A stretch of 64,000 nt of DNA from Blastocladiella emersonii ATCC 22665 (Eukaryota; Fungi; Blastocladiomycota), in contig JANHCV010000010.1 in assembly GCA_025594325.1 (NCBI GenBank), positions 1,612,001 to 1,676,000 on the forward strand, written 5' to 3'. The position numbers and the translations under genes are program-made. The notes below the pieces were generated by a model. It was given only the letters and a program-made list of their open reading frames with translations, made no database searches and was not told the origin of the DNA. Below, in pieces: positions 2,798 through 55,733 of this stretch (position 1 is the stretch's first letter; each line of letters starts with the position of its first letter).

Positions 2798-3948
2798 TCA
2801 TAGCTTCTGATTGGTGGTGGTTGACTTTGGTGGCCGCGCTGCCGAACCACTGCCACTGCTGGCGACCGCCGCCGCTGCCGCCGCGGACGACTGGGTCAGG
2901 AACGAGCGGAGGTTGAGGGAGAAGGTGCGCAGGCCCTGCATCTCCTCGCGCAGTCGCAGCGACTCGGCCTGCAGCTCGACGTTGGCGCGGAGCTCGACGC
3001 GGGCGAGCGACGCGCGCAGGCCGTCGACCTCGGCGACGAGGCGGTCCAGCACGGCCTCGTGCTCGAGGACCTGGGCGGAAAGCGGCGGCGGCGGTGGGGG
3101 CAGTGGCGGCTCTCGGGCGGCGAGCTCAAGGGCAGCGACGCGTTCGAGCACCGCGTCCAGCGTGGACGCCATGTTGGCCTGCGCGAACCGCAGCGTCGCG
3201 TTCTCGGTCTCGAGGGCCGCGGCCCGCTCGCGGTCGGCGGCGCATGCGGGGCATCCGCACCGGGTGCATGCGGTCGGCGATGTTGGGCTCGCTTCGGGGC
3301 ATCGGTGCGACTACAGTCAGGGTGTAGTGTCAGCCACTCGCAAACTCGCGCGCGATGAAGGGAATGAGCCACGGGGTACATCAGCGTCGGCCAGGGCAAG
3401 CAGCTCGCCGCAGCCGCGGGGGCACGCGTGGCGCGCCGCCACGCACGAGGCCTGGTGCGAGTCGAGATCGTGCGCTGGGACTTGGGCGGCGCAGTGGGCG
3501 CACGCGGCGAGGCGGAACGGACACTGCGACCGCGCGTGGTCGGGCAGCTGCGCGCGCGCGACGGTGGCGGGGCACCCGCGGTCCGCGTTCGGGCACAGCA
3601 CCAGCAGCTCGTCGGCGAGGCTCCGGACGACGTAGGCGGGCGTCGGGTCGCGGGTGCACTCGGCGCGGCACGCCGGGCATGCGGCGTTGGACGCGAGCGA
3701 GCGGCGCAGGCACGCGGCGCAGAACGTGTGTCTGGCGGCTCGTGAGAGAGTCAGCGCGACGCTGTGGGGTGTCTCGGGATCGGGCGGCCGTACCCGCACG
3801 GCGTGCTCTCGGCGTCGAGGAAGGGCAGCGTGCAGATGGGGCAGACCAGGTTGGCGTTGGGCGCGCCGGCGTAGTGCAGAGCGGCGTAGTCGAGCTCGCC
3901 GTGGCTCAGCGGCTGCCGCGGGTCTGCTCCGTGTCCAGCCGCGTCCAT
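2798..3948 (-). CDS. RING (C3HC4) plus TRAF-type zinc-finger, coiled-coil protein (putative E3 ligase), copy 1
   Basis: Spliced RING CPICTLPFLDAESTPCG|HTFCAACLRRSLASNAACPACR (intron 3793-3732), then CPNADRGC..HARSQCPFRLAACAHC..HQASC..CPRGC zinc-finger repeats and a C-terminal heptad-rich helix ending QKL*. Confidence 0.85.
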
Positions 3949-4149
3949 TGGTTGTGATGCATGAGTTGGTTGGCGTTGCGAGTTGGGGGGAGATGGGACG
4001 GTTAGGATGGTTGGCGCCGACCCTTTCGGCAGAGCGCGCCTCGAGCCCCGTTCCCCGCTCTCCCCCACACGCATCGCACGAAGCACATGAATACGGCCTG
4101 AGAGTGAGGGCCTTGCATATACTATATCATACTTGCTGCATCTGAGACA

Positions 4150-4904
4150 ATGGCGCCGCCAACACCGCCCGAGGACCCGTCGCGGCAGCATCGGCCAGCC
4201 ACTGCCGACACTGCCGACGACACCGCCGACGCGCCGCCGTTCGACCACCGCGGGCAGCGGTCCGTGTGCTTTCTGCTCGAGCGCTTCGAGCGGACCGCCG
4301 GCGAGCTGCAGGACCGGGACCGGGACCGGCAGCGGCAGGCCGGCGAGAACGACGACTCGCCGCCGCGCACGCGCGTCCGCACGGCGTACTGCTTCCGGCG
4401 GGACCCGGCGCACGCGCGGGCGCAGTGGTGGAACCCGGGCGCGGGCGTGTACCTGACCCGCTTCGCGCAGCCGCACCCGCGCGCGCCGTGGGAGCGCGAC
4501 CGCCGCGGCGAGGTGCACGTCGGCGACGAGCTGGCGGGCGTGCCGTCGCACGGTGCGTGTGCGCTCACGCTCACCCTCGAGAGACGACCACTGACATGCG
4601 ATGAGGGCACCTCCTAGTGGCGGCCGTGGCGCAGCGCACCTTCGCGCCGCCGATCGAGCTGACGGCGCGGTACGTGGCGGGGTTCGCGGACGGCACGCAC
4701 GCGGGCCTGCTGTCGCGGGTCGCGGCTAACGTGGCGTCGGGCGCGCCGGTACGGGCGGCCGAGCGCATCGCCGACCTGTGGGCCGCGGCGCTCGCCAGGA
4801 CTGCGGGCTCAGTCGACGGCGGCGGTGGCGACCCGCCGCGCGCTTCCTCCCAGCCCGGCGCCCGCGACGACGACGACGGCAATGACAAGAGCCGGAAACG
4901 GTGA
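4150..4904 (+). CDS. Hypothetical protein, two exons, copy 1
   Basis: ATG 4150; intron GTGCGT..TAG 4553-4617 joins ORF 4150..4617 in frame to ORF 4617..4904; codons mostly end in G/C; no recognisable domain. Confidence 0.6.
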
Positions 4905-4994
4905 CGGAAGCGTGTATACTGTAATAAAGACTCTTAGCGAACGGGGATCCATGGAGTGGACTGAAAAGGGAGGAGAGGTTGGCCCACTGACAGA

Positions 4995-5743
4995 CTACTG
5001 GAGGAGGGCGAGGCCCGCCACGGCAGCGAGAACGAGGCCGCCCGACGACGCGGCCGCGCGCTCCGAGGCAGCGCCGCTGTTGAGGGCGGGCGCCACGGAC
5101 GCCGTGGGCGCGGGACCCGTAGCGGTGCTCGCAGACTTGGCCGAGGCAGAGCCCGTCGACGTGGCGGACGCCGAGGCCGACGTGGTCGTCGTCGACGCGG
5201 CGGAGGTGGTCGTGGCGGACGTCGTCGCGGAGCGGCTCGCCGACGTCGAGGTGGCCGAGATGAAGACGGACGTCTGGCCGGTGCCGCCCTGCACGGCGAA
5301 CGGCGCCGAGTACTTGAAGGTGGCGGCGTCCAGGCCGTCCCACCGCCACTGCAGCGCGTAGTCGACGCCGTTGACGATGCCCGCGGGCACGATCCACGAC
5401 ATGGAGCCGGCCTCGGGGCGGGCGGCGCCGATGGCGGCGATGGGCGTCTGTCGGTTGCGGCAGCGCAGTGTTGGTGAGTTGGGAGATGCACAAAGTGGAG
5501 CTAGCGCCGCCCGGCCGGCACACGCACCATGTTGTCCGGGTTGCCGTTGACGCGCATCAGCACGACGGAGCCCGTGGTGCCCGCGGGCGCGCCCTGGGCG
5601 GCGGGGTCGAACGTCCAGCTGATGGGGACCGTCGAGCCGGCCGTCCACGGCGCCGTCGGCGTGCTGAGCGTGACCTGGCCGGCGTGCACGGCGGCGACGG
5701 CGGCCAGCGCGAGGGCGAGGAGGGCGACGAGGTGGTGCTTCAT
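4995..5743 (-). CDS. Secreted, Ser/Thr-rich, probably GPI-anchored cell-surface protein (Kre9/Knh1-like N-terminal domain), copy 1
   Basis: Signal peptide MKHHLVALLALALAAVAAVHA, WTAGSTVPISW..SMSWIVP..DYALQW..YSAPFAV domain, S/T-rich stalk, hydrophobic C-terminal tail (GGLVLAAVAGLALLQ); one intron. Confidence 0.8.
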
Positions 5744-6135
5744 CTGCTAAGTAGTGTGTGGTGGTTGCTATTTAATGGGTTGTGCGAGAGAGAGAGAGCG
5801 GGAACGTGTTGACCGACGGCGGCCGAGCGCCACCGATGCCGGCGAGTCGGCCGGCTGAAACTGCCTCCGTGCGTTTCATCATGCACTCATCGCAGCGTTT
5901 GATTGGCCGGCCTTGGACGCCATGACGCACTGCGAGGGATCCACGCGCCCATGTCCGACGCGTCCGCCCGTCCGTCCGTCGTCCCCTCCCGCCGGCCCGG
6001 GTCGCTCTACGTCGTCGAACGAGAAATACAAAAAGGGGGACTCGTGGATTGCAAAAAAAAAGGATCAAACAAAACTCGGCAGCGAGCAAGCAGGCCATCA
6101 TCGGCTCGCCTCGGACACCACCCATCCATCACGGC

Positions 6136-7993
6136 TCACTCGAACAGCGTGTTCTTGACCGCGTTCTCGGCATAGTGCAGCACCGCGGGCAGGATCTCCT
6201 CGCCCGTCGGGATGATCTCTACACGCGTGGACGCCACCCCAAGTTAGCCCACCCGTACTTGTTCCCGTTCCTCAGGGACACCGCCGTACCCTTCTTGTCG
6301 AGCACAAAGCCCGGGCCCCACCACTCGGCCGTCGGGCGCAGCTCGATCGTGATCCCGTACGGCCGCACGTACTTGGCCTTGGCCGGCGCGCCCTCGGCCG
6401 TCGCCGGCGTGATCGGGAACTGCTGCAGGGCAAAGTAGTCGCTCGCGCCGCCCGTCGTCGCTACGCGCGTGGACACGTCAAGTCAGCTCCCGCAATCAGA
6501 GCCACCCCCACCCCCAGCCAGCCGTACCGTAGAGGTCAATCGACTTCTGCGACGTGTAGCTCTTGCCGTGCACCTTCTTGATGATCTTGGCCATGGCGTC
6601 GCACACGGCCTTGTGCTCCTTCTCGTACGCGTAGTCCTTGCGCTCCCACCCGAGCGGGCGCAGGATCAGCTGCGAGTACGAGTGCAGGTCGAGCCCCGCC
6701 ACTGTGCGCGGGTGGCTCAGGAAGAACTTGGTCAGCGCCTGCACCTCGGGCTCGGACGCCTCGGACGGGCCCCTACGAGTACCCCACGAATGAATGCGTC
6801 AGTACCCCCGACCGGTCCTCCCAACACTCGACAAACAAGTATGGGCGACGCACATGTACGTGTCCGAGTAGGGGAACTTGGAGCTGCCGCCGTGGCCCCA
6901 GTTGGCCGGGTAGTTGCGGTTGAGGTCGACGCCGTACGCCCCGCCGCCGTTGCTGCGCCGGTTCTTGCGCCACAGCCGGTCGCTCTCCCACGTGTACGCG
7001 TACCCGTCCGGGTTCACCACGGGCACGATGATCCACTCGGCCGCGTCGAGCAGCGCCGTGATGCGCGGCGCGCTGCTCGTCACCAGGTGGTACGTGAGGT
7101 ACTGCGTCGTCGCGTCTACGTTTGTGTAGTTTGTGTGAGGGGCGAGCGTCAGTGAAGTTATGAGGAGGACCGACTGCCGCCGCGGAACGCAAAGGACGTA
7201 CGCGAAATCCACTCGCGCGCGTGGATACCGCCCTGCACGTAGATCTGCTTCTTGCGGTCGAGCGGCACCGACGAGTTGCGGTTGGTGATCTTGAGCGCCA
7301 TGAGCGTGCGGCCCTCGTGCGTCGTGCCAATGTTGGGCACCAGCTCGACGCGCTCCGGGTGGCGCTGCGCGAGGATCGTGTACCACTCGACAATCTCGTC
7401 GAACGGGTGGTACTCGCTGAACCACGTCTTGGGGTCCGACACGAGGTCGCGCACCGGGGTCGTCGCGGTCGCGACCGTGGCCCTGACGGCGCGGCGGGAC
7501 GCGGCCTCGGGCGCCAGCATGTCGGCCTCAATGTCGCGCACGAGCGTCTCGGCCGACGCGAGCGGGACGTGGCGGCCGGCCACCTCGGCGAGGTCGGGGC
7601 GCGCGGCACGCACGTCGATGCGGCCGTCGGCAACCGCCCACACGTCGGCGTTGAGATCGAGCAGCAGCTGGTGCAGGCGCGGCACGTCCTCGCGCTTGGC
7701 GGCGGTCAGGCGGAGCAGCTGCTGGCCTGCGGGTTGAGAGTGGCGTGTGGTGGGAAGTAGACGGTTAGTTGGACGGACGCGGCAAAGGGCGGGCGAGGTC
7801 GGTACGCACCCGAGTAGTCGGCGCGGGTAGGGCGCGAGCGCAGGGCCCACTGCGACGGGAGCGAGGCAAGGCTGCCGAGCCACGACGGCGCCGCGTCGGC
7901 CGGAGGGGCGGCCGCGAGGAGCAGCAGCGCGCACGCAGCGGCGGCGGCGAGGGCGGCGAGGACGCCGAGGGTGGGGCGCGATGAGCGTTTCAT
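6136..7993 (-). CDS. Secreted zinc carboxypeptidase (M14A) with propeptide, multi-exon, copy 1
   Basis: Signal peptide, GGIHAREWIS (HxxE zinc motif), LWRKNRR, GVDLNRNYP, DLHSYSQ and YGITIELRP (catalytic Glu); stop at 6138-6136 after HYAENAVKNTLFE. Confidence 0.92.
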
Positions 7994-8276
7994 TGATTGA
8001 TGTGTTTAATCTCCGCGGGCGATGAGCTACTGGGGAGGGAAGAAGCGAGAGGGTGGGAACCGGACCGCCCCAAACCCTTTCTTTCGCGGCGGCTGACCAA
8101 CGCGCGCGCGGTGCCGAGCGACCGAATTTCGACGCGTTTTTCGCCCCCGCGTGACGCCCACCTGACCGCGTCTCGCCCGGTTTTCGCCAAGACGCGTCCC
8201 GCGCTCGTTGTCAGGCAGGGTTATAGATGGAAAAGGCTATGTATGGAATGCTGGACGACTCGGCGACACATCCACA

Positions 8277-9692
8277 TCACCACGGGAACGACGGGTCGTA
8301 GGCCGCCCACCCAGCGGACCGCGGGCGCGGCTGCGCGGTCCCGAGCTCGTGCTCGTCATCGTCGCTCCCATCAACCGACGACGCTGGTTCAAAGTCGTGC
8401 GGCGGCGGGGCGTGGGTCGGTGGCGGCGGAAACGCAGGCAGCGGGCGGACCAGCATCTCCCAGTCAATGTCGTCCGAGTGGTCCGAGTCGGACCCGGACG
8501 CGCCCTGGGCGTCGAGATCGTCGCCGAGGTTGCCGTACGACGCGTAGAAGCTGGACAACGGGATCGGCGGGATGGAAGGACGCCACGCCGCGGCACGCGA
8601 GTGCTGCGGGGCGAGGAAGTCGGGCGGAAGCTGGCTAGGGCGCCGGTCGAGGTCATCTTCGTCCTCGTCGTCGTCGGTCTGGTCGGGAGCAGCCGTGGCA
8701 GCAGAAGCAGAGGCCGATGAGGAAGAAGCGGCGGGGCGGTCAGCGTCGAGCTCGTAAGCGAGCGGCGAGTTGGGTCCACCGGGAGGATGTATGGTGCGAC
8801 CGTCGCGACGAGTCCGTTGCGTGGATGAGAGACGGGCGAGAATGCTGTTGTAGAGGGCGTCGTCTTCGCGGTCGCTCGACTCGCCGTCCTCCTCGTCACT
8901 CGCCTCGTCGTTGTCAAGCGCGTAACGTTGCCGAAGGTTGTCGACTCGGCGGCTCAGCGAAGCAAGATGGTCGGCAAGGGAATTCGAGAAGCTTCCGGGC
9001 ACGTCATTCGGGTGGGCTGAGCTGGACACGGAAAGCGGGCGCGGCGCGGTACTGCGCGGGAGCAGAGGGGGCAAAATCGGCTCCCCATTCGGGTTGGGCG
9101 AGAGGTCGGTCGGGGTGAAGTAGATGCCGCCGGGAGGGAGGCGCGGGGGAGGGCCGAGCGGGGCACGTGTCATAGCCGCGGTCGACGCGGGCTGCGCGGG
9201 AGCGGCAGTGGCGGAGGCGGAGGAGAGGCGAGGAAGGTAGATGTGAGGCGCAGGCAAGCGGCCTTGGGTAGATCCGCTTGCCGGGGACGAGTTGCTGCCG
9301 CCGGGCTGCAACACGACGGGCAGCGGGGTTTGGGACGTGAGGGGCTCGGTCAAGCCGGCGCCGCCCTCGCCCTGGATCCCCCCAGGGAGCGGGCTGAACA
9401 GGTGGCGGAAGAGGAAAGAGCCCGGGGCGCCCGGCTCGTCGAGGTCAGACGGCGGAAGCGACGTGGACATGACGGCGGGATCAAGGAAGGCGGGTGCGCG
9501 AGCGCCGAAAGCAGGCTGCGAGGCGGAACCGGCAGTAGCGGTGGGCCGGCGCGGCGGGTACGGCATGCCGCGGGGAGCCGGGGCGGGGCAGCACGGGCAG
9601 TCGCGGTGCGGGCCGCCGAGATGGCGTGACCCGCCCACGCGCTTGAGGCGGCGGGGCGTGCGGAGCGAGCGGAGCGAGCCGGGGTTGCCCAT
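8277..9692 (-). CDS. Hypothetical low-complexity (P/S/D/E-rich) protein; start uncertain
   Basis: Long ORF 8277..9782 with first plausible ATG at 9692 (MGNPG); acidic tracts and short ordered segments (FLFRHLFSPLPGG, DDALYNSILARL); no family recognised. Confidence 0.5.
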   Translation of the reverse strand: MGNPGSLRSLRTPRRLKRVGGSRHLGGPHRDCPCCPAPAPRGMPYPPRRPTATAGSASQPAFGARAPAFLDPAVMSTSLPPSDLDEPGAPGSFLFRHLFSPLPGGIQGEGGAGLTEPLTSQTPLPVVLQPGGSNSSPASGSTQGRLPAPHIYLPRLSSASATAAPAQPASTAAMTRAPLGPPPRLPPGGIYFTPTDLSPNPNGEPILPPLLPRSTAPRPLSVSSSAHPNDVPGSFSNSLADHLASLSRRVDNLRQRYALDNDEASDEEDGESSDREDDALYNSILARLSSTQRTRRDGRTIHPPGGPNSPLAYELDADRPAASSSSASASAATAAPDQTDDDEDEDDLDRRPSQLPPDFLAPQHSRAAAWRPSIPPIPLSSFYASYGNLGDDLDAQGASGSDSDHSDDIDWEMLVRPLPAFPPPPTHAPPPHDFEPASSVDGSDDDEHELGTAQPRPRSAGWAAYDPSFPW

Positions 9693-9733
9693 GGTCAGGT
9701 TCGATACGTTGCAGCAGGTGTGAGGGGGCCGAT

Positions 9734-10597
9734 GTGGGCCGTGGCAGTGGTAGCGAGAAGGGGCCTGGGGCCTGGTGGACACCCGGCCGGCGAAGGCGCT
9801 GGTTCCAGCGCTGGTTCACTCGCCGGTTCTGTTGTCGTGCGCGGCCCTGCTCTTGCGCGCTTGCGGCGGCAAGGCCGGTGAGTCACCTTTTTGGCTTGCC
9901 CGGACGGTTCGCCGCTGACCAGATCGGCGACCTTTGCTCTTCAGCGCTCGCTTCGCTCTCCCCTCCATCCGAACTCAGCGTTCCATGTAACTTGGCCACC
10001 ACGCGTGGGCGGTCGTACGGGCGCATCTCGCAGCGCGCGGTTCGGGTCAGCGGACCCGTGTCGCGCAAGCTGCCGCTGTCGCTCGAGGACCTGTACCGCG
10101 GCACAACCAAGAAGCTCAAGGTGACGCGCACCACGCTGGCCGGCACCGCCTCGGACAAGGTGCTCGAGGTGCACGTGAAGCCCGGGTGGAAGGCGGGCAC
10201 CAAGGTCAAGTTTCCCGGCGAGGGCGACGAGCTGCCCGACGGGACGGTGCAGACCATCGAGTTTGTGATTGACGAGAAGCCGCACCCGGTGTTCAAGCGC
10301 CAGGGCGACGACCTCGTCGTCGCGCTCGACCTCGTCGTCGCGCTCGACCTGTCGCTCGCCGAGGCCCTGACGGGGTTCCCGCGCGTCGTCAAGACGCTCG
10401 ACGACCGCAACCTCAAGATCGCGTCCGACAAGGTGTCGTCGCACGGCCAGACGATGCGGTTCCGCGGCGAGGGCATGTCCGTGTCCACGTCGCCCGGCGC
10501 CAGGGGCGACCTCGTCGTCAACATCACCGTCAAGTTTCCCGCGGCCGTCCCCGAGGCTGAGAAGGACGAGATCCGCCGCGTCCTCGCGGGCCTGTGA
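9734..10597 (+). CDS. Hsp40 (Sis1/DNAJB-type) C-terminal substrate-binding domain only; no J domain found; possibly truncated
   Basis: From about 10058: VSRKLPLSLEDLYRGTTKKLKVTR, VKPGWKAGTKVKFPGEGDE, HPVFKRQGDDL, LAEALTGF, GEGM..RGDLVVNITVKFP. No HPD motif or in-frame ATG seen upstream. Confidence 0.75.
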   Translation: MGRGSGSEKGPGAWWTPGRRRRWFQRWFTRRFCCRARPCSCALAAARPVSHLFGLPGRFAADQIGDLCSSALASLSPPSELSVPCNLATTRGRSYGRISQRAVRVSGPVSRKLPLSLEDLYRGTTKKLKVTRTTLAGTASDKVLEVHVKPGWKAGTKVKFPGEGDELPDGTVQTIEFVIDEKPHPVFKRQGDDLVVALDLVVALDLSLAEALTGFPRVVKTLDDRNLKIASDKVSSHGQTMRFRGEGMSVSTSPGARGDLVVNITVKFPAAVPEAEKDEIRRVLAGL

Positions 10598-10650
10598 TCT
10601 GGTTCTCGTTCTCGCACCCAACCCACTCGATGATTGTACATATATACAGG

Positions 10651-10716
10651 GCGCTTACGACGTCCGAGATTCTGTCTCCTCAGCGCTTACGACGTCCGAG
10701 ATTCTGTCTCCTCAGC
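10651..10716. repeat. Two tandem copies of a 32-bp unit (GCGCTTACGACGTCCGAGATTCTGTCTCCTCA)
   Basis: Units at 10651-10682 and 10683-10714, read directly. Confidence 0.95.
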
Positions 10717-10880
10717 ACCTTTATTGTGGAACTCGAATCCCAGGGCTCGAGCCGCTGGTGTTCACCGCGGCGCTACGTCGCGCGCCCGCCTCCTCGGCGG
10801 ATCAGCGCGCCTCAGAAAGGACGAGAACAAGCGAGACGATGAGGCAGCGGGATAGTCGCAAGTGTGGATAAATTAGGTAC

Positions 10881-11193
10881 GAGGGACGAGGGACGAGGGA
10901 CGAGGGACGAGGGACGAGGGACGAGGGACGAGGGACGAGGGACGAGGGACGAGGGACGAGGGACGAGGGACGAGGGACGAGGGACGAGGGACGAGGGACG
11001 AGGGACGAGGGACGAGGGACGAGGGACGAGGGACGAGGGACGAGGGACGAGGGACGAGGGACGAGGGACGAGGGACGAGGGACGAGGGACGAGGGACGAG
11101 GGACGAGGGACGAGGGACGAGGGACGAGGGACGAGGGACGAGGGACGAGGGACGAGGGACGAGGGACGAGGGACGAGGGACGAGGGACGAGGG
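10881..11193. repeat. Perfect heptanucleotide array (GAGGGAC)x44 plus a partial unit
   Basis: Read directly; it gives the DEGRGT / PRPSSLV peptide repeats in the ORF track. Confidence 0.98.
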
Positions 11194-11235
11194 TAGGGTA
11201 TGGTAGAGTAGGGTAGGGTAGGGTATGGTCGGGTC
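11191..11235. repeat. Degenerate pentamer array (GGGTA)n abutting the heptamer array
   Basis: gggta gggta tggta gagta gggta gggta gggta tggtc gggtc. Confidence 0.85.
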
Positions 11236-11302
11236 GAGGGGGTATGGCAGACAAATGACAACCAGAAGAGCACGACGACCGCCGCCGCCGCCTCGACGGG
11301 GC

Positions 11303-11880
11303 TCACTCAGCCGCCGAAATCGACGTCGCGGCCGAGCTCGACGAACTCGACGCCGTGGTGGCGATCTCGAACGGGCACTGACGGACAAAGTCGCGCACGT
11401 CGACGGGCATGGCCCCGCACACGCCCTGCAGGTACTTGGCGAGCTGCGTGACCACCTTGGCGGCCGTGAGGGCGGGCGTCGACCCGATCTGGCCCGCGTC
11501 GGCAGCCTCGTCGGCCCCGTCGGCGGCGAACTCGGGGGCCACGATCACGTTGGCATGCGCGGCGGCGCCCGAGTCCTCAATCAGGACCATGAGCATGTGG
11601 TCGTGCGCGTAGGGCCACGCGAGCACCTTGGCGGGGCTCTTGACCAGGACGCCCCCGGGCTCCTTGGACGTTGCGTACTCGCCACCGGCGGCCCAGTAGT
11701 ACGGGACGCGCGCCATGGCGAAGCGCGCGCCCAGCCGGCGGGACAGGCACCGCTTGGCCGCGCCCTCGTCCATGGCGGCGGTCCACACCCCCACGTTACA
11801 CAGGCCGCTGTCGGTGACCGCCTCGACAAAGTGTCGGAGGTGCTTGTCCGAGACGTTGCGGAACAGCTTGCTCCACGGGT
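11303..11880 (-). CDS. Probable FCP1/NIF-like HAD-fold phosphatase-like protein; 5' end unresolved
   Basis: Frame reads PWSKLFRNVSDKHLRHFVEAVTDSGLCNVGVWTAAMDEGAAKRC...LVKSPAKVLAW..HMLMVLIEDS, resembling the NIF 'L..F...vgvWTaa...K.l..v...liDDs' pattern. The N-terminal DxDxT motif was not found. Confidence 0.45.
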
Positions 11881-12424
11881 CTAGACGGGGCGATGGCGAG
11901 GACGAGCGGGTCAGCCGTCCGGTCCTGGGCGCGCGTGGACGAGGCGGGAGTCACGCGCGGGTCGAGGGCGTAGTAGAGCGACCGGAGAGCGCGCGGGGCG
12001 CCGATGTGGGTCACTCGGAGTGATCGCGGAATTGTCTCGCGGCTGCTCACGTGGTAGGCCGAGACGCGTCTCCCGTCTCCCTGTTTTCTCCGCCACGCGT
12101 CTCCCTTCTCGCACTCAACCGGGTCGAAAATTTGCGAGCGAGAGCGAGAGCAACAGCGGCGAGTGGAGCATGCCCGCCCGTCCCCACGCGTTGCACCAAG
12201 AGACGATACGAGCCTGGGCATCGCGGCACGCACCGCGGCGGGGCACCCGCCCGCGCTCGCCCCTCCTCCTCGCCTCGATCCGAGCCGAAAGCTGTGCTCC
12301 TCGCCACCCACCGCACACCACTCTATGACATCGACCCAATCACGCTGCTTCAGCCTCGCCGCCACCGCCAGCGAGTGCGGTCCGCCGACGGCGACGCGTC
12401 CGCATCGAGCCACCCTTGCGACAT

Positions 12425-13620
12425 GGCGGGCATGAGCTCCGGCCGGCCGCGCAGCTCGCGGTTAAGTCCTCGGTCGCGGTCGACAACGAGGTACGCCTCG
12501 TCCGCGGGCAACTCACGCTCGGTGATCCGTGTAGACTCTCGAGAACATCATCCGCGCCATCCGCACCACCCTCCAGCTCTTCACGATCGGCTCGCGGTAC
12601 GGGATCGGGATCGGGATCGCGGCCACACTCGCTCGACGTGCATGCCCGACACGCCTTCAGAGTACGCACTGCCCTCCTGGCACGTGTCGGGAATATCGGC
12701 GAGCTATATTCATAGCGTCGGGTGTCGGGCGACTGGTCGCGCGGTCCCGCGCCACGAGCCGGGCTCGGCAGCGGCGGCGGGCATGAGCAACGGCCGGCCG
12801 CGCAGCTCACGGTCGAGTCCTCGGCCACGGTCAACAACAAGGTACGTTTCTCCCGTCTCGCGGCCGTCGTCGTGATCCGGCAACTCACGCTCGCTGATCC
12901 GTGTAGTGTAGATTCTCCGAGGACATCATGATCATCCGCGCCATCCGCACCATCATCCATCCAGCTCTTCACGATCGTCTCGCGGTACGGGATCGGGATC
13001 GGGATCGCGGCCACACTCGCTCGACGTGCATGCCCGACACGCCTTCAGAGTACGCACTGCCCTCCTGGCACGTGTCGGGAATATCGGCGAGCTATATTCA
13101 TAGCGTCGGGTGTCGAGCGACTGGTCGCGCGGTCCCGCGCCACGAGCCGGGATCGGCAGCGGCGGCGGGCATGAGCTACGGCCGGCCGATCAGCTCACGG
13201 TCGAGTCCTCGGCCACGGTCAACGACGAGCCACGGTCAACGACAAGGTACGCCACCTCCGACTCGTGGCTGTCGTCGCCGCGATTGGATCGGGCAAGGCA
13301 ACTCACTACTCGCTTGCGCCGACAGGTTTCCAAGCTCTCCGCGCCAGGTCGTCACCACCAGCAAGTTCACGCTCAGTGTCAAGTCCCACGCCCGGCGCAC
13401 GGTGAATCGTGCCTCTCTTCATCAAGGTACGCGCGTTCCGACCTGGCTGCGCCGTGATCCGGTAACTGACTCCCGTTTGCCGCGCAGTTTCATCAAGCTT
13501 TGCGCAAATCAGCAAGCCGTGTCCGCCCAGGTCGTCGTTGGCCTTCAACACGCCCAAGTGCCGCGAGTTACAGGTGCGGGCCACGTCTCGCGCGCCCTCA
13601 ACTTCCTCTTCATTGTCAAC
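12425..13620 (+). pseudogene. Degenerate gene remnant containing three diverged tandem copies (about 350-390 bp period) of an exon-intron unit
   Basis: Unit start GGCGGGCATGAGC at 12425, 12776 and 13164; each copy has a GTACG donor (12491, 12842, 13247) and a downstream AG; coding-like stretches (TLENIIRAIRTTLQLFTIGSRY; QVVTTSKFTLSVKS; SRALNFLFIVN) are interrupted by frameshifts and stops. Confidence 0.5.
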
Positions 13621-15293
13621 CATCAGCCATCAGCTATCAGCCGTCAACCCATCAACCTATCAACCCATCAACGCCCCCAACACGTCGTTGCCCAAGCTCC
13701 CGGCCTCACGCTCCTCATTGCCAAGGCTGTCGCGATCGACCACACCATCCTCGGGGAAACTTGCTGTACTCTGAGATCATATCATCACTTGTCGCGCCGT
13801 GTATACACTTCTCGGCCGTCACGGACGCGCTCCCCTTGTGCGACTCACTCTCTGGCCACGTCTCTGGCCGCGGCGCTCGCCCCCGCCCGTCGTCCTCTGA
13901 ATCCAGCCGGCAGCAGCCCTGTCGCAACTTGCGAGTCGCAAGCCAAAGCGCCGCCGAGCGGCTCTGGCTCCCCGCGCGCCGAGCTCGGCCAACACTGCGC
14001 TGCACGGTGTGATGGGCCGTTCAGCTCGCCTGCCTCGCCTCGCCTTGCCTCGCCTTGCCCTTCCAGCCGATCGCGCCGGCGGTACGGTGCTGCTGAGAGC
14101 TGAGAGCTGATCGCGCAGGCGGCAGGGCGAGCGAAAAGTAGTAAATACGCTCCCGATGGCCACCGCGCCGCCGACGCCGCGCTGCTTACAAGTACGGTAT
14201 GCCCGGCTTCTCATCGAATCGGATGATCGAGATGAGTGAACCGCCCGCTCGTCTTGAGCTTCGCGCGTTTATTACGATAATCGACGGCGACGAGCAGCAT
14301 CGCCTTCTGCTCTCTGCTGTTCGCGCAACACTACACGGACCCAGCGGTCGTCCTGCTGCTCGCTCCCTCGCGAGATTCCAGTGAAAAGAGGGAACCCGTC
14401 CGTCCGTGCGAGCGGCGCGCGCCGTTCGCACGGCACCCCGCACGAACGATTCCGCCCGGCAACGAGCAGCAGGGCGGCCGCGGGGTCTCCAGCGTGCGCC
14501 GAGCTCGAGCGAGCGGCAAAAGGGTTTCGTGGATCGAGTCGGCGGACTCGCTCGCGCCGTGCAAGGTCGCGGGCAGCAAAGACGGCTTATCGAGCGCTTG
14601 ATCCGTATTGCCCGTATCCTCGCCGCCCTGGCACTGGTGCTCCCACTGGCTGCCTCACTCAGCCTCGTAGCGCACGGTGAAGCCACCCTTGAGGCTTCGA
14701 GCGAGAAGACCTGGCCACCGCAGAACGGGTTGAGCCCGCAAACCGTGTGTACCGCCACATGAACGTGATGCGGTTCACGGCCGCGTCGCCAAACGCCGCG
14801 CTCCACCCACGGAGGGCAGGCAGCACGTCAACCGAGGCGTGGCGCAGAACGTCGAGGCCTACTCGGGATGCAGCGGCGTTTGAGCCAGCTGTCCGACGAA
14901 GCGGTCTGCCAGCGCACACACGGGTAGATGAAGGCGCCATGGACGACGTGTCCGGGCACGGACAAGTGTGTGGCGAGTGTGCGGGCGACCTCGCTGGCAA
15001 GCGTCCTCCGAGTCGCATTACTTTCGAGCGAGCGCGTCCAGGTGGCGAGGCTGAACAAAGATTCACGCGAGAAGCATAATGCGGCAAGTTGGATTCATAG
15101 TCTTCATGGTTTGGTGCGAGTAGCGTGCATGATGGGGCAGCAGAAGGGAGGGAGAGCGCGGGCCTACTACTACTCGAGGCCGCGGCGGTGGTCTCCTGCA
15201 TGCCCGCCTGCATGCTGCGCCTGCGGTCGTTATGTCGCTTTATCCCTCACGGTCACCCGCTCTCACCCTTCCACCACCCGCAGCCGCGCCATC

Positions 15294-15809
15294 ATGGAAA
15301 CTCATGCAAACGTCGCAGCCGTGCCGACCTACGCGCTCCTCGAGGAGACGCTCGCCTACTACCGCGACATGCTCGACGGCGCGGACCCCACGGTGCTGGT
15401 CTCCTTCGGGTCGTCCCCGGCCGCGTCGCCGCTAGACCCGCGTCAGGGCGTACGTGCCGTCGAGTCTGTCGCGCACCCTAGCCATGTCATGGCCCAGATC
15501 CTGCTTCCGCGGCCGCTCCCGTCCGGCCGTCGCGGTGCAACGTGCGCGCTCGTCGAGTTCACGCCCGTGGGGTTCACCGTCGCTGACGTGGTCCCGTGCT
15601 ACGCGTCCAAGCCGGAGTCTGGCGTGTCGCTGTCGCCCGAGGACGAGGACGCGCTTGAGCTGGCAGCAAGAGATCTCGACGCGATGCGCGGGCGCACCTT
15701 CGACTCGCTCGAGGCGCTGTTTGACGTGGTGGGAGGCGCCGGCCACCGCGCGAACCTGGCGTCGGTCCTCGGCGCGCGGCTCGCGGCGCTGGCTGCCTCT
15801 CGGTCATGA
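15294..15809 (+). CDS. GSKIP/DUF727-domain protein
   Basis: CALVEFTPVGFTV...TFDSLEALFDVVGGAGHRANLASVLGARLAAL parallels the GSKIP pattern (CLELTEAGLKV...HETVYSLLD...FGNALLQRLEAL); ATG 15294. Confidence 0.65.
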   Translation: METHANVAAVPTYALLEETLAYYRDMLDGADPTVLVSFGSSPAASPLDPRQGVRAVESVAHPSHVMAQILLPRPLPSGRRGATCALVEFTPVGFTVADVVPCYASKPESGVSLSPEDEDALELAARDLDAMRGRTFDSLEALFDVVGGAGHRANLASVLGARLAALAASRS

Positions 15810-15931
15810 ACCTCAATAGATCCTTCCACCGAGTTGATGATTGACTAGTGAACATATTTCAGATATGATGAGAATGACAAGACTACGACTAGCTACAACT
15901 CCTCGTCCCGCCGACCGCGTCGTGGCGGCGC

Positions 15932-37429: not shown

Positions 37430-37470
37430 GTTAAAAAATAAATCATATCCTGCTTTCGCAACGCCCCTAC

Positions 37471-47715: not shown

Positions 47716-47880
47716 GGTGAACGGTGTCGACGGCTTTGGGGTTTGGGGGAGAGGGAGCGGGCGCCTTTCTGCGCTTCCCTGTCGGTGGGCAGGTCGGTGG
47801 GCAGGTCGGCAGGCCCGAGTCGAAGCCGAGGCGAGGTGTTCCTGCACGCTTTCCCTCTCGCAACGCCGCCTTGCGACTGT

Positions 47881-49386
47881 ATGCAACACATGGAAAATAG
47901 CTATGCCCCGCGAGGCGGGCAATCTCGTCCGCGCCAGCCTGCACCGGCGTTCGGGGCCGGCCCCGCTCAGCCGCGGCCGGCTGTACCGACTAACACCCGG
48001 GCTGCCACCACGACGACGGGTTCGCGCGACGCTTTGGCTCAGGCCACACCCGCCCCGCCCAGACTGAGCAATGTTCACGGACTCGCGACCCCAAACCTCA
48101 TCTTTGGCGAGCAGCCTGGCGTTGATGACCGTGCTTCGAGCCAGGCGAACGGGACTCACTTAATCGCTCAGCAGACGCACCTTACGCCTTCGACCCTGGA
48201 GCTCGCCATTATGGCCAATAAGGCCATGGCCATGTTTCGCGCCGACGAGGCAGCAACCGGCGAACCGACGGCTTCCAATCCTGCTGCACATCTCCCTCTC
48301 AGAGCTCAAACCGCGCAGAATCGATCGCAGCTGCAACCACCCCATCAAGCGCAGCCAGCCTATTCCAACATTTACGAGCATCCCGTGCCGTTTGCAGCTT
48401 CCACTCACGGGTCGTCGGATCGGGTCCCGCTCCCACAGGAACTGGCCGGCCAGCAGTTTGCGGGCAGTGATTCCAGCTCGACGGTTGTGGAGCTTCCTCG
48501 TCATTCTTCCGCTCAGTCTCTCGCTGGCCCGCTCGCGTTCCCCTACTCCGGGACTGGAGAACCCCCGCAGTATACCTTACGCGTCCCTGTCGCGTACTCG
48601 TGGACGTTTCACGACCATCCCTCCGCCCGCCACTACGCAGATGGTTGTGTCCCGTTCACACTACCAATGTATCCTCACGCCCCGCCAACGCTCGTACCTG
48701 TCCATCCAAGGACATTTCGCCTCGATCGCGACTGGGCCCGTTCTGGCGAATCGCCGTCCTTCATTTCACTCTCAGCAGCGCTTTCCATCATGGACAATGC
48801 GGCCGCACAAGCAGCGCGCGGCATTGCTGCACCGCTCTGGTTGACGCCGAACCGCGTTGCGTGTGCCCGCGAGCTTCAGCACCGCCTTGCCCACTGGGGA
48901 TCACCTGGAGCCTCGGCCCAACTTTCGCGCGTTGATGCCGGAACCACAGCGGGACCCGACGCGCTTAATGTTATCGACGCAGGGCTTGAGGAGCTGAACA
49001 GGCTATTGCTCTCCTCGGATCGCGTAAGCGCGCATGGAATCCTCGACTTCGCCTTGGGACTTTTGACGGGCTGGTCCCACCATCTGTGCATCAACGCGCC
49101 CGACTCCCAAGTGCGTTCAGTTCGATGCCTCCTCGCACCCGTCCAGCAAACTAACTCGCGTCCGGCCCCCAACCGTTTGCGTGTAGAAGGCTCAGAACGT
49201 GGACGATTGGCTGGACTCCATTAACGACACGCTGTTTCATCCTCGTCGCTTACACCTCCGAAATCCGCTGGACAACGGTCTCATGTTCGTACGTATTACA
49301 TCGAGTCGGAACTGGAACCTAACTTAACTAACTCACTGATGGGCTGGCTGGCTCCTTGTCAGGTCGAGATTGAACTTCTGGAGTAG
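47881..49386 (+). CDS. Hypothetical protein (disordered N-terminus, ordered C-terminal part); exon ends approximate
   Basis: Long ORF 47692..49224 with ATG 47881; plausible GT..AG introns near 49111-49187 and about 49290-49362; no family recognised. Confidence 0.5.
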
Positions 49387-49464
49387 GGATAGATGCGGGC
49401 ATGGAGCGAACACGACCATTTATTGCATTCAACCCTACTGGCATCGGCGTTGACCTCGCGTGCT

Positions 49465-49900
49465 CTACCGGTAGCGGCGAGGATGCTCCACAGCAGGGAC
49501 CTTGAGGCGAGCAAGTTGATGGTTAAGGTTCGGTGCCTTGGTCGCCCCCTTGGCGCCCTGGTAGATGCGGGCGAAAGTGTTTGTCAGAGTCCGTCTGCTT
49601 CTGCGGGGGAAGTGACACACGAAGGCCGGGGAGGCGTACAGAGGAAGCAATGCACTTGCTGATCGCCAGCGCAGCCTCCTTGCAAGCGGGGCTTTCGATG
49701 CCGCTTGCAGACCAGCAGTTGAACAGGACGGTCATTTCAGTTGCGCAAGGCGCAGCTAAACACGTTCATGGTTGGGCGACATGCGGACTTGCGTGAGTCC
49801 ATGGATCACCACAGGCGGCACAGGGGTAGACGCATGACAAACCCTGAAGAAAAGCCTTGGGCCGCAATTGCAGGTACTTCCGAGGTGCAGTAGCAGACAT
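49465..49900 (-). CDS. MRP10: Mitochondrial small-subunit ribosomal protein mS37 (twin CX9C), three exons
   Basis: Spliced by eye: MSATAPRKYLQLRPKAFLQA|APCATEMTVLFNCWSASGIESPACKEAALAISKCIASS|GAKGATKAPNLNHQLARLKVP..; two CX9C motifs, and NLNHQLARL resembles Mrp10 NINYHAARL. Confidence 0.8.
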
Positions 49901-50264
49901 GTTGCTGTTCGTGGAGGTCGCTTACTCGGCCGATGTCGGCGAGTCCCATCCTCCAGGCAAGGCTTGAAGTTGCGTGCTTGGGCATCACGTGGACGGCGAT
50001 CGTGCGGCTTTGCCTTGCGCGCACGACCAGTTCCCTTGCCACGACTGCAACTGGAGGTCCTTGATCCGAGCGGGTCTCCGGTTGCGGTCTCCAATGATCT
50101 GGCGAGGGGGGCGACAGGCCAGAAGCCTGGGCAGAAGCCATCTCTGGAGAGCCTTCCGGCGCACGCGAGCGCGGAATAAATATCCTGGCTTACGGCAGCG
50201 GGGCAACTCTCACACCGTCCCCAGCTCGTTCGTTCCTTCAGGAAGCCTCATAGATGTTGTTCAT

Positions 50265-51415
50265 TCACAGTTTCTGACTGGAGGTAGTCGACTTTGATGG
50301 CCGCGCTGCCGAACCACTGCCACTGCTGGCGACCGCCGCCGCTGCCGCCGCGGACGACTGGGTCAGGAACGAGCGGAGGTTGAGGGAGAAGGTGCGCAGG
50401 CCCTGCATCTCCTCGCGCAGTCGCAGCGACTCGGCCTGCAGCTCGACGTTGGCGCGGAGCTCGACGCGGGCGAGCGACGCGCGCAGGCCGTCGACCTCGG
50501 CGACGAGGCGGTCCAGCACGGCCTCGTGCTCGAGGACCTGGGCGGAAAGCGGCGGCGGCGGTGGGGGCAGTGGCGGCTCTCGGGCGGCGAGCTCAAGGGC
50601 AGCGACGCGTTCGAGCACCGCGTCCAGCGTGGACGCCATGTTGGCCTGCGCGAACCGCAGCGTCGCGTTCTCGGTCTCGAGGGCCGCGGCCCGCTCGCGG
50701 TCGGCGGCGCATGCGGGGCATCCGCACCGGGTGCATGCGGTCGGCGATGTTGGGCTCGCTTCGGGGCATCGGTGCGACTACAGTCAGGGTGTAGTGTCAG
50801 CCACTCGCAAACTCGCGCGCGATGAAGGGAATGAGCCACGGGGTACATCAGCGTCGGCCAGGGCAAGCAGCTCGCCGCAGCCGCGGGGGCACGCGTGGCG
50901 CGCCGCCACGCACGAGGCCTGGTGCGAGTCGAGATCGTGCGCTGGGACTTGGGCGGCGCAGTGGGCGCACGCGGCGAGGCGGAACGGACACTGCGACCGC
51001 GCGTGGTCGGGCAGCTGCGCGCGCGCGACGGTGGCGGGGCACCCGCGGTCCGCGTTCGGGCACAGCACCAGCAGCTCGTCGGCGAGGCTCCGGACGACGT
51101 AGGCGGGCGTCGGGTCGCGGGTGCACTCGGCGCGGCACGCCGGGCATGCGGCGTTGGACGCGAGCGAGCGGCGCAGGCACGCGGCGCAGAACGTGTGTCT
51201 GGCGGCTCGTGAGAGAGTCAGCGCGACGCTGTGGGGTGTCTCGGGATCGGGCGGCCGTACCCGCACGGCGTGCTCTCGGCGTCGAGGAAGGGCAGCGTGC
51301 AGATGGGGCAGACCAGGTTGGCGTTGGGCGCGCCGGCGTAGTGCAGAGCGGCGTAGTCGAGCTCGCCGTGGCTCAGCGGCTGCCGCGGGTCTGCTCCGTG
51401 TCCAGCCGCGTCCAT
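50265..51415 (-). CDS. RING/TRAF-type zinc-finger protein, copy 2 (different last codons: ARPSKSTTSSQKL vs ARPPKSTTTNQKL)
   Basis: Same as copy 1 except the last about 11 codons, which lie outside the identical block. Confidence 0.85.
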
Positions 51416-51616
51416 TGGTTGTGATGCATGAGTTGGTTGGCGTTGCGAGTTGGGGGGAGATGGGACGGTTAGGATGGTTGGCGCCGACCCTTTCGGCAGA
51501 GCGCGCCTCGAGCCCCGTTCCCCGCTCTCCCCCACACGCATCGCACGAAGCACATGAATACGGCCTGAGAGTGAGGGCCTTGCATATACTATATCATACT
51601 TGCTGCATCTGAGACA

Positions 51617-52371
51617 ATGGCGCCGCCAACACCGCCCGAGGACCCGTCGCGGCAGCATCGGCCAGCCACTGCCGACACTGCCGACGACACCGCCGACGCG
51701 CCGCCGTTCGACCACCGCGGGCAGCGGTCCGTGTGCTTTCTGCTCGAGCGCTTCGAGCGGACCGCCGGCGAGCTGCAGGACCGGGACCGGGACCGGCAGC
51801 GGCAGGCCGGCGAGAACGACGACTCGCCGCCGCGCACGCGCGTCCGCACGGCGTACTGCTTCCGGCGGGACCCGGCGCACGCGCGGGCGCAGTGGTGGAA
51901 CCCGGGCGCGGGCGTGTACCTGACCCGCTTCGCGCAGCCGCACCCGCGCGCGCCGTGGGAGCGCGACCGCCGCGGCGAGGTGCACGTCGGCGACGAGCTG
52001 GCGGGCGTGCCGTCGCACGGTGCGTGTGCGCTCACGCTCACCCTCGAGAGACGACCACTGACATGCGATGAGGGCACCTCCTAGTGGCGGCCGTGGCGCA
52101 GCGCACCTTCGCGCCGCCGATCGAGCTGACGGCGCGGTACGTGGCGGGGTTCGCGGACGGCACGCACGCGGGCCTGCTGTCGCGGGTCGCGGCTAACGTG
52201 GCGTCGGGCGCGCCGGTACGGGCGGCCGAGCGCATCGCCGACCTGTGGGCCGCGGCGCTCGCCAGGACTGCGGGCTCAGTCGACGGCGGCGGTGGCGACC
52301 CGCCGCGCGCTTCCTCCCAGCCCGGCGCCCGCGACGACGACGACGGCAATGACAAGAGCCGGAAACGGTGA
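51617..52371 (+). CDS. Hypothetical protein, copy 2
   Basis: Identical translation to 4150-4904. Confidence 0.6.
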
Positions 52372-52461
52372 CGGAAGCGTGTATACTGTAATAAAGACTC
52401 TTAGCGAACGGGGATCCATGGAGTGGACTGAAAAGGGAGGAGAGGTTGGCCCACTGACAGA

Positions 52462-53210
52462 CTACTGGAGGAGGGCGAGGCCCGCCACGGCAGCGAGAAC
52501 GAGGCCGCCCGACGACGCGGCCGCGCGCTCCGAGGCAGCGCCGCTGTTGAGGGCGGGCGCCACGGACGCCGTGGGCGCGGGACCCGTAGCGGTGCTCGCA
52601 GACTTGGCCGAGGCAGAGCCCGTCGACGTGGCGGACGCCGAGGCCGACGTGGTCGTCGTCGACGCGGCGGAGGTGGTCGTGGCGGACGTCGTCGCGGAGC
52701 GGCTCGCCGACGTCGAGGTGGCCGAGATGAAGACGGACGTCTGGCCGGTGCCGCCCTGCACGGCGAACGGCGCCGAGTACTTGAAGGTGGCGGCGTCCAG
52801 GCCGTCCCACCGCCACTGCAGCGCGTAGTCGACGCCGTTGACGATGCCCGCGGGCACGATCCACGACATGGAGCCGGCCTCGGGGCGGGCGGCGCCGATG
52901 GCGGCGATGGGCGTCTGTCGGTTGCGGCAGCGCAGTGTTGGTGAGTTGGGAGATGCACAAAGTGGAGCTAGCGCCGCCCGGCCGGCACACGCACCATGTT
53001 GTCCGGGTTGCCGTTGACGCGCATCAGCACGACGGAGCCCGTGGTGCCCGCGGGCGCGCCCTGGGCGGCGGGGTCGAACGTCCAGCTGATGGGGACCGTC
53101 GAGCCGGCCGTCCACGGCGCCGTCGGCGTGCTGAGCGTGACCTGGCCGGCGTGCACGGCGGCGACGGCGGCCAGCGCGAGGGCGAGGAGGGCGACGAGGT
53201 GGTGCTTCAT
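52462..53210 (-). CDS. Ser/Thr-rich GPI-anchored cell-surface protein, copy 2
   Basis: Identical translation to 4995-5743. Confidence 0.8.
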
Positions 53211-53602
53211 CTGCTAAGTAGTGTGTGGTGGTTGCTATTTAATGGGTTGTGCGAGAGAGAGAGAGCGGGAACGTGTTGACCGACGGCGGCCGAGCGCCAC
53301 CGATGCCGGCGAGTCGGCCGGCTGAAACTGCCTCCGTGCGTTTCATCATGCACTCATCGCAGCGTTTGATTGGCCGGCCTTGGACGCCATGACGCACTGC
53401 GAGGGATCCACGCGCCCATGTCCGACGCGTCCGCCCGTCCGTCCGTCGTCCCCTCCCGCCGGCCCGGGTCGCTCTACGTCGTCGAACGAGAAATACAAAA
53501 AGGGGGACTCGTGGATTGCAAAAAAAAAGGATCAAACAAAACTCGGCAGCGAGCAAGCAGGCCATCATCGGCTCGCCTCGGACACCACCCATCCATCACG
53601 GC

Positions 53603-55460
53603 TCACTCGAACAGCGTGTTCTTGACCGCGTTCTCGGCATAGTGCAGCACCGCGGGCAGGATCTCCTCGCCCGTCGGGATGATCTCTACACGCGTGGACG
53701 CCACCCCAAGTTAGCCCACCCGTACTTGTTCCCGTTCCTCAGGGACACCGCCGTACCCTTCTTGTCGAGCACAAAGCCCGGGCCCCACCACTCGGCCGTC
53801 GGGCGCAGCTCGATCGTGATCCCGTACGGCCGCACGTACTTGGCCTTGGCCGGCGCGCCCTCGGCCGTCGCCGGCGTGATCGGGAACTGCTGCAGGGCAA
53901 AGTAGTCGCTCGCGCCGCCCGTCGTCGCTACGCGCGTGGACACGTCAAGTCAGCTCCCGCAATCAGAGCCACCCCCACCCCCAGCCAGCCGTACCGTAGA
54001 GGTCAATCGACTTCTGCGACGTGTAGCTCTTGCCGTGCACCTTCTTGATGATCTTGGCCATGGCGTCGCACACGGCCTTGTGCTCCTTCTCGTACGCGTA
54101 GTCCTTGCGCTCCCACCCGAGCGGGCGCAGGATCAGCTGCGAGTACGAGTGCAGGTCGAGCCCCGCCACTGTGCGCGGGTGGCTCAGGAAGAACTTGGTC
54201 AGCGCCTGCACCTCGGGCTCGGACGCCTCGGACGGGCCCCTACGAGTACCCCACGAATGAATGCGTCAGTACCCCCGACCGGTCCTCCCAACACTCGACA
54301 AACAAGTATGGGCGACGCACATGTACGTGTCCGAGTAGGGGAACTTGGAGCTGCCGCCGTGGCCCCAGTTGGCCGGGTAGTTGCGGTTGAGGTCGACGCC
54401 GTACGCCCCGCCGCCGTTGCTGCGCCGGTTCTTGCGCCACAGCCGGTCGCTCTCCCACGTGTACGCGTACCCGTCCGGGTTCACCACGGGCACGATGATC
54501 CACTCGGCCGCGTCGAGCAGCGCCGTGATGCGCGGCGCGCTGCTCGTCACCAGGTGGTACGTGAGGTACTGCGTCGTCGCGTCTACGTTTGTGTAGTTTG
54601 TGTGAGGGGCGAGCGTCAGTGAAGTTATGAGGAGGACCGACTGCCGCCGCGGAACGCAAAGGACGTACGCGAAATCCACTCGCGCGCGTGGATACCGCCC
54701 TGCACGTAGATCTGCTTCTTGCGGTCGAGCGGCACCGACGAGTTGCGGTTGGTGATCTTGAGCGCCATGAGCGTGCGGCCCTCGTGCGTCGTGCCAATGT
54801 TGGGCACCAGCTCGACGCGCTCCGGGTGGCGCTGCGCGAGGATCGTGTACCACTCGACAATCTCGTCGAACGGGTGGTACTCGCTGAACCACGTCTTGGG
54901 GTCCGACACGAGGTCGCGCACCGGGGTCGTCGCGGTCGCGACCGTGGCCCTGACGGCGCGGCGGGACGCGGCCTCGGGCGCCAGCATGTCGGCCTCAATG
55001 TCGCGCACGAGCGTCTCGGCCGACGCGAGCGGGACGTGGCGGCCGGCCACCTCGGCGAGGTCGGGGCGCGCGGCACGCACGTCGATGCGGCCGTCGGCAA
55101 CCGCCCACACGTCGGCGTTGAGATCGAGCAGCAGCTGGTGCAGGCGCGGCACGTCCTCGCGCTTGGCGGCGGTCAGGCGGAGCAGCTGCTGGCCTGCGGG
55201 TTGAGAGTGGCGTGTGGTGGGAAGTAGACGGTTAGTTGGACGGACGCGGCAAAGGGCGGGCGAGGTCGGTACGCACCCGAGTAGTCGGCGCGGGTAGGGC
55301 GCGAGCGCAGGGCCCACTGCGACGGGAGCGAGGCAAGGCTGCCGAGCCACGACGGCGCCGCGTCGGCCGGAGGGGCGGCCGCGAGGAGCAGCAGCGCGCA
55401 CGCAGCGGCGGCGGCGAGGGCGGCGAGGACGCCGAGGGTGGGGCGCGATGAGCGTTTCAT
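53603..55460 (-). CDS. M14A zinc carboxypeptidase, copy 2
   Basis: Identical translation to 6136-7993. Confidence 0.92.
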
Positions 55461-55733
55461 TGATTGATGTGTTTAATCTCCGCGGGCGATGAGCTACTGG
55501 GGAGGGAAGAAGCGAGAGGGTGGGAACCGGACCGCCCCAAACCCTTTCTTTCGCGGCGGCTGACCAACGCGCGCGCGGTGCCGAGCGACCGAATTTCGAC
55601 GCGTTTTTCGCCCCCGCGTGACGCCCACCTGACCGCGTCTCGCCCGGTTTTCGCCAAGACGCGTCCCGCGCTGACGGCTTCTCTTGCGCTCTCTAAACTC
55701 ACGCCATATGGAAACCGGAACCTCTGCGACACC

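Follow-up and report, generated by a model that had tools for sequence, protein, structure and literature searches.

What kind of event leaves two letter-identical copies of a multi-gene segment on one fungal contig, far apart and set among different neighbours? The question is raised by a stretch of the Blastocladiella emersonii ATCC 22665 genome (GenBank assembly GCA_025594325.1, contig JANHCV010000010.1, hereafter C2, positions 1,612,001-1,676,000), which we refer to as the window; it is 64,000 nucleotides long, and coordinates given below without a contig name are positions within it. An initial annotation of this DNA had noticed that a block of four genes, 5,375 bp long, recurs in it without indels at an offset of 47,467, and had listed recent duplication, conversion and an artefact of assembly as possible sources. 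Comparison of the two copies with each other, with their flanks and with the rest of the genome leads us to the view that the block is probably a real and very young segmental duplication, generated by homology-primed ectopic copying, i.e., by interlocus gene conversion in the broad sense.

The pairwise comparison fully confirmed the recurrence: 2831-8205 equals 50298-55672 at 5,375 of 5,375 bases, coding and non-coding alike, the offset being 47,467 throughout, with 0 mismatches and 0 indels. Exact identity breaks off precisely at 2831/8205 and 50298/55672, on both sides. The two copies can be described as follows:

2831-8205: copy 1 of the identical block, the probable donor; 0 mismatches against copy 2; 70% GC, with a GC content at third codon positions (GC3) of 0.85-0.95, like that of its neighbours.
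50298-55672: copy 2 of the identical block, the probable recipient; a GC-rich island in a neighbourhood of 57-59% GC.

Identity on this scale cannot be due to chance. When the entire assembly (32.65 Mb in 21 contigs) was searched, just two full copies were recovered, C2:1,614,831-1,620,205 and C2:1,662,298-1,667,672, which lie on the same contig in direct orientation with their starts 47,467 bp apart; the other matches to the block are short, 67-84% identical, and fall on paralogs of its M14 peptidase gene on contigs C18 and C3. As a fully identical stretch of 5,375 bp present at two loci, the block lies well within the size and identity range of segmental duplications (at least 1 kb, at least 90% identity, at least two loci), and it is also a low-copy sequence of non-transposon character, having two copies, no terminal inverted repeats (TIRs) or long terminal repeats (LTRs), and host-type genes only. 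It is not a tandem duplication, as 42,092 bp of DNA, with genes that are mostly single-copy, lie between the copies. The 95% upper bound on the divergence between the copies is ~5.6e-4 per site. At the divergence of a second near-identical pair in this genome, an inverted duplication on contig C11 (see below), ~4.8 differences would be expected per 5,375 bp, and the block has 0 (P ~0.8%); the block pair is therefore the youngest, or the most recently homogenised, among the pairs measured here.

At the left junction, it was initially taken that homology between the loci ends at 2831, but we found that it continues beyond this point in diverged form and in register, across the 3' end of a gene that is cut by the edge of the block. 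The features concerned are:

2746-2830: diverged in-register extension to the left of copy 1; covers the final codons of the RING/TRAF gene, its stop codon and the beginning of its 3' untranslated region (UTR).
50207-50297: partner extension to the left of copy 2; ~73% identity, one 6-bp indel.
2798-3947, minus strand: RING/TRAF zinc-finger gene, copy 1; three exons (3947-3794, 3730-3380 and 3312-2801) encoding ~338 amino acids.
50265-51414, minus strand: RING/TRAF gene, copy 2; the same length, with a C-terminus that is chimeric relative to copy 1.

A local alignment of 2746-2830 with 50207-50297 scores 48, against 19 +/- 2.4 for shuffled sequences (maximum 27). The same pair is recovered by blastn with E = 7e-9, and gapped blastn merges the extension with the alignment of the block itself. 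Over the 36 bases immediately before the left edge, 29/36 are identical without a gap. The extension spans the last 11 codons, the stop codon and the beginning of the 3' UTR of the gene, which is recognised by its RING and zf-TRAF matches in Pfam and has splice sites that can be read off the sequence. The stop codon of copy 1 (2798-2800) falls outside the identical block, 30 bases past its left edge, so that the description as a block of four genes holds for the rest of the gene content but not for four whole genes. The stop occupies the same position in both copies; of the 11 final residues three differ and eight are kept (open reading frame (ORF) 50265-50639 versus 2798-3172), and in the genome search the last exon is 98% identical between the copies. 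The substitutions in the coding part of the extension are transitions in six of seven cases and run in both directions.

Hence, a block with 0 differences in 5,375 bases adjoins 85 bases that differ by ~27%. To judge from this contrast, the two parts cannot both have arisen from one event with uniform mutation thereafter. Since identity switches from 100% to ~73%, in register, exactly at the left edge, an older homologous copy would have existed before the identical tract, which appears to have been written recently over or beside it. An identical tract with an abrupt edge into diverged homology is what characterizes interlocus gene conversion, and this is what is found at 2831. Neither a third copy of either left flank nor a third close RING/TRAF paralog was found in searches of the genome, and thus the variant tail would not have been imported from elsewhere.

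The right junction presents a different picture. No similarity was found past 8205/55672 (score 20, shuffles 21 +/- 2.4), no decayed remnants of the block genes were found elsewhere in the window, and a comparison of the right flank of copy 2 with the inside-left part of the block found no continuation of the old stub across the insertion. What the right end does have is a short motif that it shares with the left end:

2834-2840 (plus strand) and 8199-8205 in copy 1, 50301-50307 and 55666-55672 in copy 2: the 7-mer CCGCGCT at the ends of the block.

The motif sits 3 bp inside the left end and constitutes the final seven bases of the block. Of random 5,375-bp segments drawn from the window, 0.4% have a 7-mer common to both ends within 12 bp, a frequency obtained post hoc, and the presence of CCGCGCT at both ends of the block is suggestive of a trace of microhomology.

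Base composition offers a hint as to which locus was copied. The block has 70% GC and, in exons whose frame was checked, a GC3 of 0.85-0.95; similar values (GC3 0.80-0.96) are found in the genes around copy 1, whereas those around copy 2 have a GC3 of 0.55-0.71 and lie in DNA of 57-59% GC. Accordingly, GC content rises abruptly at 50298, from 0.59 to 0.73, and returns to 0.59 after ~55800. Because the composition of the block fits the neighbours of copy 1 and not those of copy 2, locus 1 may be softly favoured as the donor and locus 2 as the recipient. As a separate observation, the window as a whole shows a regional shift, from 64-78% GC with GC3 of at least 0.8 in 1-35000 to 55-62% GC with GC3 of 0.55-0.71 in 35000-64000.

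These data can be accommodated by the following scenario. At the least, the 3' end of the RING/TRAF gene would already have been represented at locus 2 by an old copy, be it a stub or an entire cassette. A break or a stalled fork there may have engaged locus 1 via this old homology, after which locus 1 would have been copied rightwards for 5.4 kb, across the four genes, and the new strand would have rejoined locus 2 just upstream of its DENN gene (see below) by annealing at CCGCGCT. Homology-primed copying with rejoining at this motif would yield the exact identity of the block, its homologous left side, its non-homologous right side and the 7-mer at both ends. The direction of copying, the repair pathway and the nature of the older copy are what we infer here: if a full old cassette had been present, the event would be a conversion of the whole cassette with an end-joined right side; if there was a stub, it would be a templated insertion. 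Among the sources listed at the outset, recent copying with the signature of conversion over older homology is thus the one that we prefer.

Several points weigh against this scenario. A classical conversion tract is expected to end within homology on both sides, yet diverged homology is present on one side only, the right flank being at the level of shuffled sequences. Homology of ~73% across 85 bp is a poor substrate for strand invasion. GC3 also follows expression level, which weakens the inference of direction, and the test of the 7-mer at the block ends was post hoc.

Two other histories, taken jointly, we regard as unlikely: the copies could be old paralogs that have been kept letter-identical by recurrent conversion, or copy 2 could have been born in culture since the isolation of the strain in ~1951. 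Were the former true, it would amount to concerted evolution, across 47 kb, of a four-gene cassette of secreted protease and E3 ligase; were the latter true, laboratory stocks should be polymorphic for copy 2 and the promoter of the DENN gene would have been rewired.

A rather unlikely possibility is that of a one-step de novo duplication of ~5,460 bp (2746-8205) by microhomology-mediated template switching without a prior copy at the target, in which case the 85 diverged bases would stem from error-prone synthesis or patchy repair of the junction. The clean right junction, the 7-mer at both ends and the lack of any further remnant of the block genes around locus 2 speak in its favour. However, 0 of 5,375 differences in the block as opposed to ~27% plus a 6-bp indel over 85 bp is far above known junction mutagenesis, and transitions, which run in both directions, predominate among the differences, the reading frame and the position of the stop being preserved.

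A two-stage route through a circle has only a slight chance of being correct. Here, the block would have left locus 1, or its sister chromatid, as a circle closed at CCGCGCT and would have crossed over into the stub at locus 2. This would agree with the same 7-mer being present at the block ends in both copies and with the stub ending in TGG followed by CCGCGCT; however, it requires the same prior stub as homology-primed copying plus an extra intermediate, and the donor copy is intact.

The chance that there is one real copy, or that the linkage as drawn is false, with the second copy made by the assembler, by purging or by polishing, is likewise slim. The published ATCC 22665 assembly, which is probably the one analysed here, was produced with the La Jolla Assembler from 605,547 PacBio high-fidelity (HiFi) reads averaging 10.5 kb (PMC9730499). 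The HiFi coverage is ~190x, as derived from the statement that the mitochondrial coverage of 8,400x is 44x higher than the mean (PMC9730499). The 247 original contigs were purged of duplicates and hand-edited to 21, followed by Pilon polishing with 65-bp Illumina reads (PMC9730499). Perfect identity is also what a false duplication would yield, and the purging and hand-editing from 247 contigs to 21 likewise speak in its favour. Nevertheless, the 5.4-kb repeat is about half as long as the mean HiFi read and the coverage is ~190x (PMC9730499), and as a rough estimate tens of reads should therefore span each copy together with both of its unique flanks. Furthermore, both copies lie in the middle of the contig with 42 kb of mostly unique DNA between them, and an assembler cannot invent a locus-specific, diverged, in-frame extension of 85 bp.

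The transposition of the four genes as cargo of a mobile element (a DNA transposon, a Helitron, an LTR element or a giant cargo element) would fit the non-tandem position and sharp ends of the copy but is scarcely credible, as the earlier statement that the block lacks a transposase, TIR or LTR stood up (the end scores of 26 and 27 are close to the 24 +/- 3 of shuffles, and the main block ORFs have no transposase, integrase or reverse-transcriptase domain), the genome has just two copies, the left edge falls within a host gene with diverged homology running on beyond it, and CCGCGCT is part of both copies and hence no target-site duplication. A 47.5-kb tandem duplication followed by deletion was rejected as unparsimonious and as leaving the diverged stub unexplained.

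Apart from the RING/TRAF gene, the block contains three further genes, listed here by their positions in copy 1:

4150-4904, plus strand: two-exon ORF without a family; exons 4150-4617 and 4617-4904; GC3 0.86-0.91.
4995-5648, minus strand: gene for a Ser/Thr-rich, Kre9/KNH-like wall protein with a hydrophobic C-terminus; Pfam PF10342.
6200-7993, minus strand: gene for a secreted M14 zinc carboxypeptidase; 3' limit approximate; Peptidase_M14 on two exons.

Domain searches were run exon by exon, each individually. The ORF at 4150-4904, for which no match was found in Pfam, the PDB sequences or the Atlas, may be coding, to judge from its codon-position GC. The PF10342 match of the Kre9/KNH-like gene has E = 1.2e-4 and 23.2 bits, slightly below the 24.6-bit cut-off, and the two exons of the carboxypeptidase gene match Peptidase_M14 with E = 6.5e-30 and 1.1e-13. 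The signal-peptide exon of the latter begins at the ATG at 7993, as read off the sequence, with 212 bp of its upstream DNA within the block. None of six ORFs drawn from the block and its flanks had an exact match in the protein collection. A mild match between 7917-7964 and 2472-2516, located towards the 5' end of the M14 gene and that of the subtilisin gene, respectively, probably reflects similar GC-rich coding of signal peptides.

The neighbourhoods of the two copies differ, and two of their components deserve separate mention:

55734-59315, plus strand: uDENN/DENN gene to the right of copy 2; Pfam DENN E = 4e-30.
8206-50297: spacer between the repeats, 42,092 bp; RPA135, RRP7, a class-II Asp-type tRNA synthetase, channel genes and others.

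Copy 1 is flanked on the left by a subtilisin gene with an Inhibitor_I9 propeptide in Pfam, and on the right by a 501-aa ORF without a family, followed by a DnaJ_C-only fragment. The small ORF to the left of copy 2 has mS37/MRP10 as its three best PDB matches, all with E of 0.6-0.9, which weakly suggests that it might be MRP10. To the right of copy 2, the first in-frame ATG of the DENN gene (55734) is 62 bp from the end of the copy, and the gene stands head to head with the M14 gene of copy 2, with ~274 bp between their ATGs. Of the outer neighbours named in the initial annotation, the subtilisin, the orphan ORF and DENN were thus recovered, with MRP10 remaining a weak call at these E values; of the spacer genes it named, RPA135, RRP7 and the Asp-type tRNA synthetase are recognised by Pfam, and VPS15 is seen solely as HEAT repeats. 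In DNA searches against the genome itself the spacer is largely single-copy, its part from 28 to 48 kb is single-copy, and no other full-length RPA135 is present in the genome. A partial copy of the RPA135 3' end and the adjoining ORF (15258-16617), ~1.3 kb long and 89% identical, lies at C6:1,152,567-1,153,848 and is probably a pseudogene fragment.

The block lies within the last 7% of the 1.735-Mb contig C2. A survey of duplications in the last 175 kb of this contig and in 40 kb of C11, again using DNA searches of the genome against itself, showed that the block is not unusual, contrary to the initial impression. The region adjoining copy 1 (10266-15147) is a rearranged older duplication of DNA located 8.4-13.2 kb before the start of the window. 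Its identity is patchy: a part of 1.6 kb reaches 99.9%, one of 416 bp has 88% and the remainder 76%. One piece is inverted, and the duplication takes in the 3' end of the DnaJ_C-only Hsp40 fragment (9647-10594). Parts of it have further copies at C2:1,533,336-1,535,051 (98%, inverted) and on C6. Judged from these alignments, it appears to show the same pattern as the block, namely an old duplication with partial re-homogenisation. On C11, 2,543,627-2,555,984 and 2,612,001-2,624,356 are inverted copies of each other over 12.36 kb or more, with 99.895% identity (11 mismatches and 1 gap); these arms are at most ~56 kb apart, and the duplicated DNA includes part of a giant ORF whose open frame extends over 3,484 aa.

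C2 also has repeat arrays at its ends. An array of 3,124-bp units (C2:1,677,213-1,735,363; 58 kb, ~18.6 copies, ~99.8% identity) starts 1,213 bp past the window. The contig begins with a long AAACCT array and ends inside the 3,124-bp array without a telomere repeat; AAACCT is described as a telomere-like motif in the ATCC 22665 genome, and for its contig c_be_22_2 telomere repeats are reported at both ends (PMC9730499).

The block therefore resembles known systems to differing degrees. Like the segmental duplications, or low-copy repeats, it is gene-bearing, non-transposon, longer than 1 kb, more than 90% identical, intrachromosomal and interspersed, and like those that cluster near chromosome ends or satellites it is found amid nested duplications of several ages, ~9.5 kb from the 58-kb tandem array. 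It has 0 differences in 5,375 bases, compared to 11/12,358 for the C11 pair and 2/1,615 for the nearby duplication. With interlocus gene conversion it shares the switch from 100% to ~73% in a continuous alignment, inside a coding exon; it differs in that one end of the tract lies in detectable homology and the other is non-homologous with 7 bp of microhomology, and in that the tract, at 5.4 kb, extends across three intergenic regions. With the templated insertions attributed to microhomology-mediated break-induced replication (MMBIR) or fork stalling and template switching (FoSTeS), it has in common the direct-orientation copy of a nearby template, the microhomology at the return junction and the lack of a target-site duplication or mobile-element hallmark; its entry junction, however, is an 85-bp diverged stub and not a few bases, and the pathway assigned to it here is a proposed one. 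The block can be seen as a fresh instance of a well-known kind, and no new mechanism is called for. A literature search found no description of segmental duplications in B. emersonii, and the genome paper is silent on them (PMC9730499).

Functionally, the four block genes are present in two doses with indistinguishable copies, which matters for read mapping, knock-outs and expression work; for short reads, the final 36 coding bases of the RING/TRAF gene are the one place where the copies can be separated. Copy 2 of this gene has three altered residues in its tail and a different 3' UTR, and copy 2 of the M14 gene retains 212 bp of its own upstream DNA and faces DENN. If copy 2 is the new one, DENN would have been stripped of its former upstream region except for 62 bp. 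The perfect 5.4-kb direct repeats are a substrate for unequal recombination, rendering the bracketed 42 kb prone to changes in copy number; pop-out of the spacer would be a possibility common to all long direct repeats. Loss of the 47.5-kb unit would take with it the sole full-length RPA135, RRP7 and the tRNA synthetase, and a haploid should therefore not survive it, whereas the gain of a further unit should be tolerated. More generally, the junctions, with an old stub on one side and 7 bp of microhomology on the other, provide a clean small example of how copies are written, and the block adds to the evidence that this early-diverging fungus, B. emersonii, tolerates perfect repeats.

Two families of dispersed repeats are also represented in the window. 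Just past the DENN ORF, 59645-60013 is a ~365-bp element with at least 30 copies of 75-98% identity on many contigs, which looks SINE- or MITE-like (i.e., like a short interspersed nuclear element or a miniature inverted-repeat transposable element). Within the older duplication next to copy 1, 12505-12946 contains a local tandem unit of 388 bp, which is at the same time a member of an older dispersed family (at least 10 copies of 68-77% identity on several contigs).

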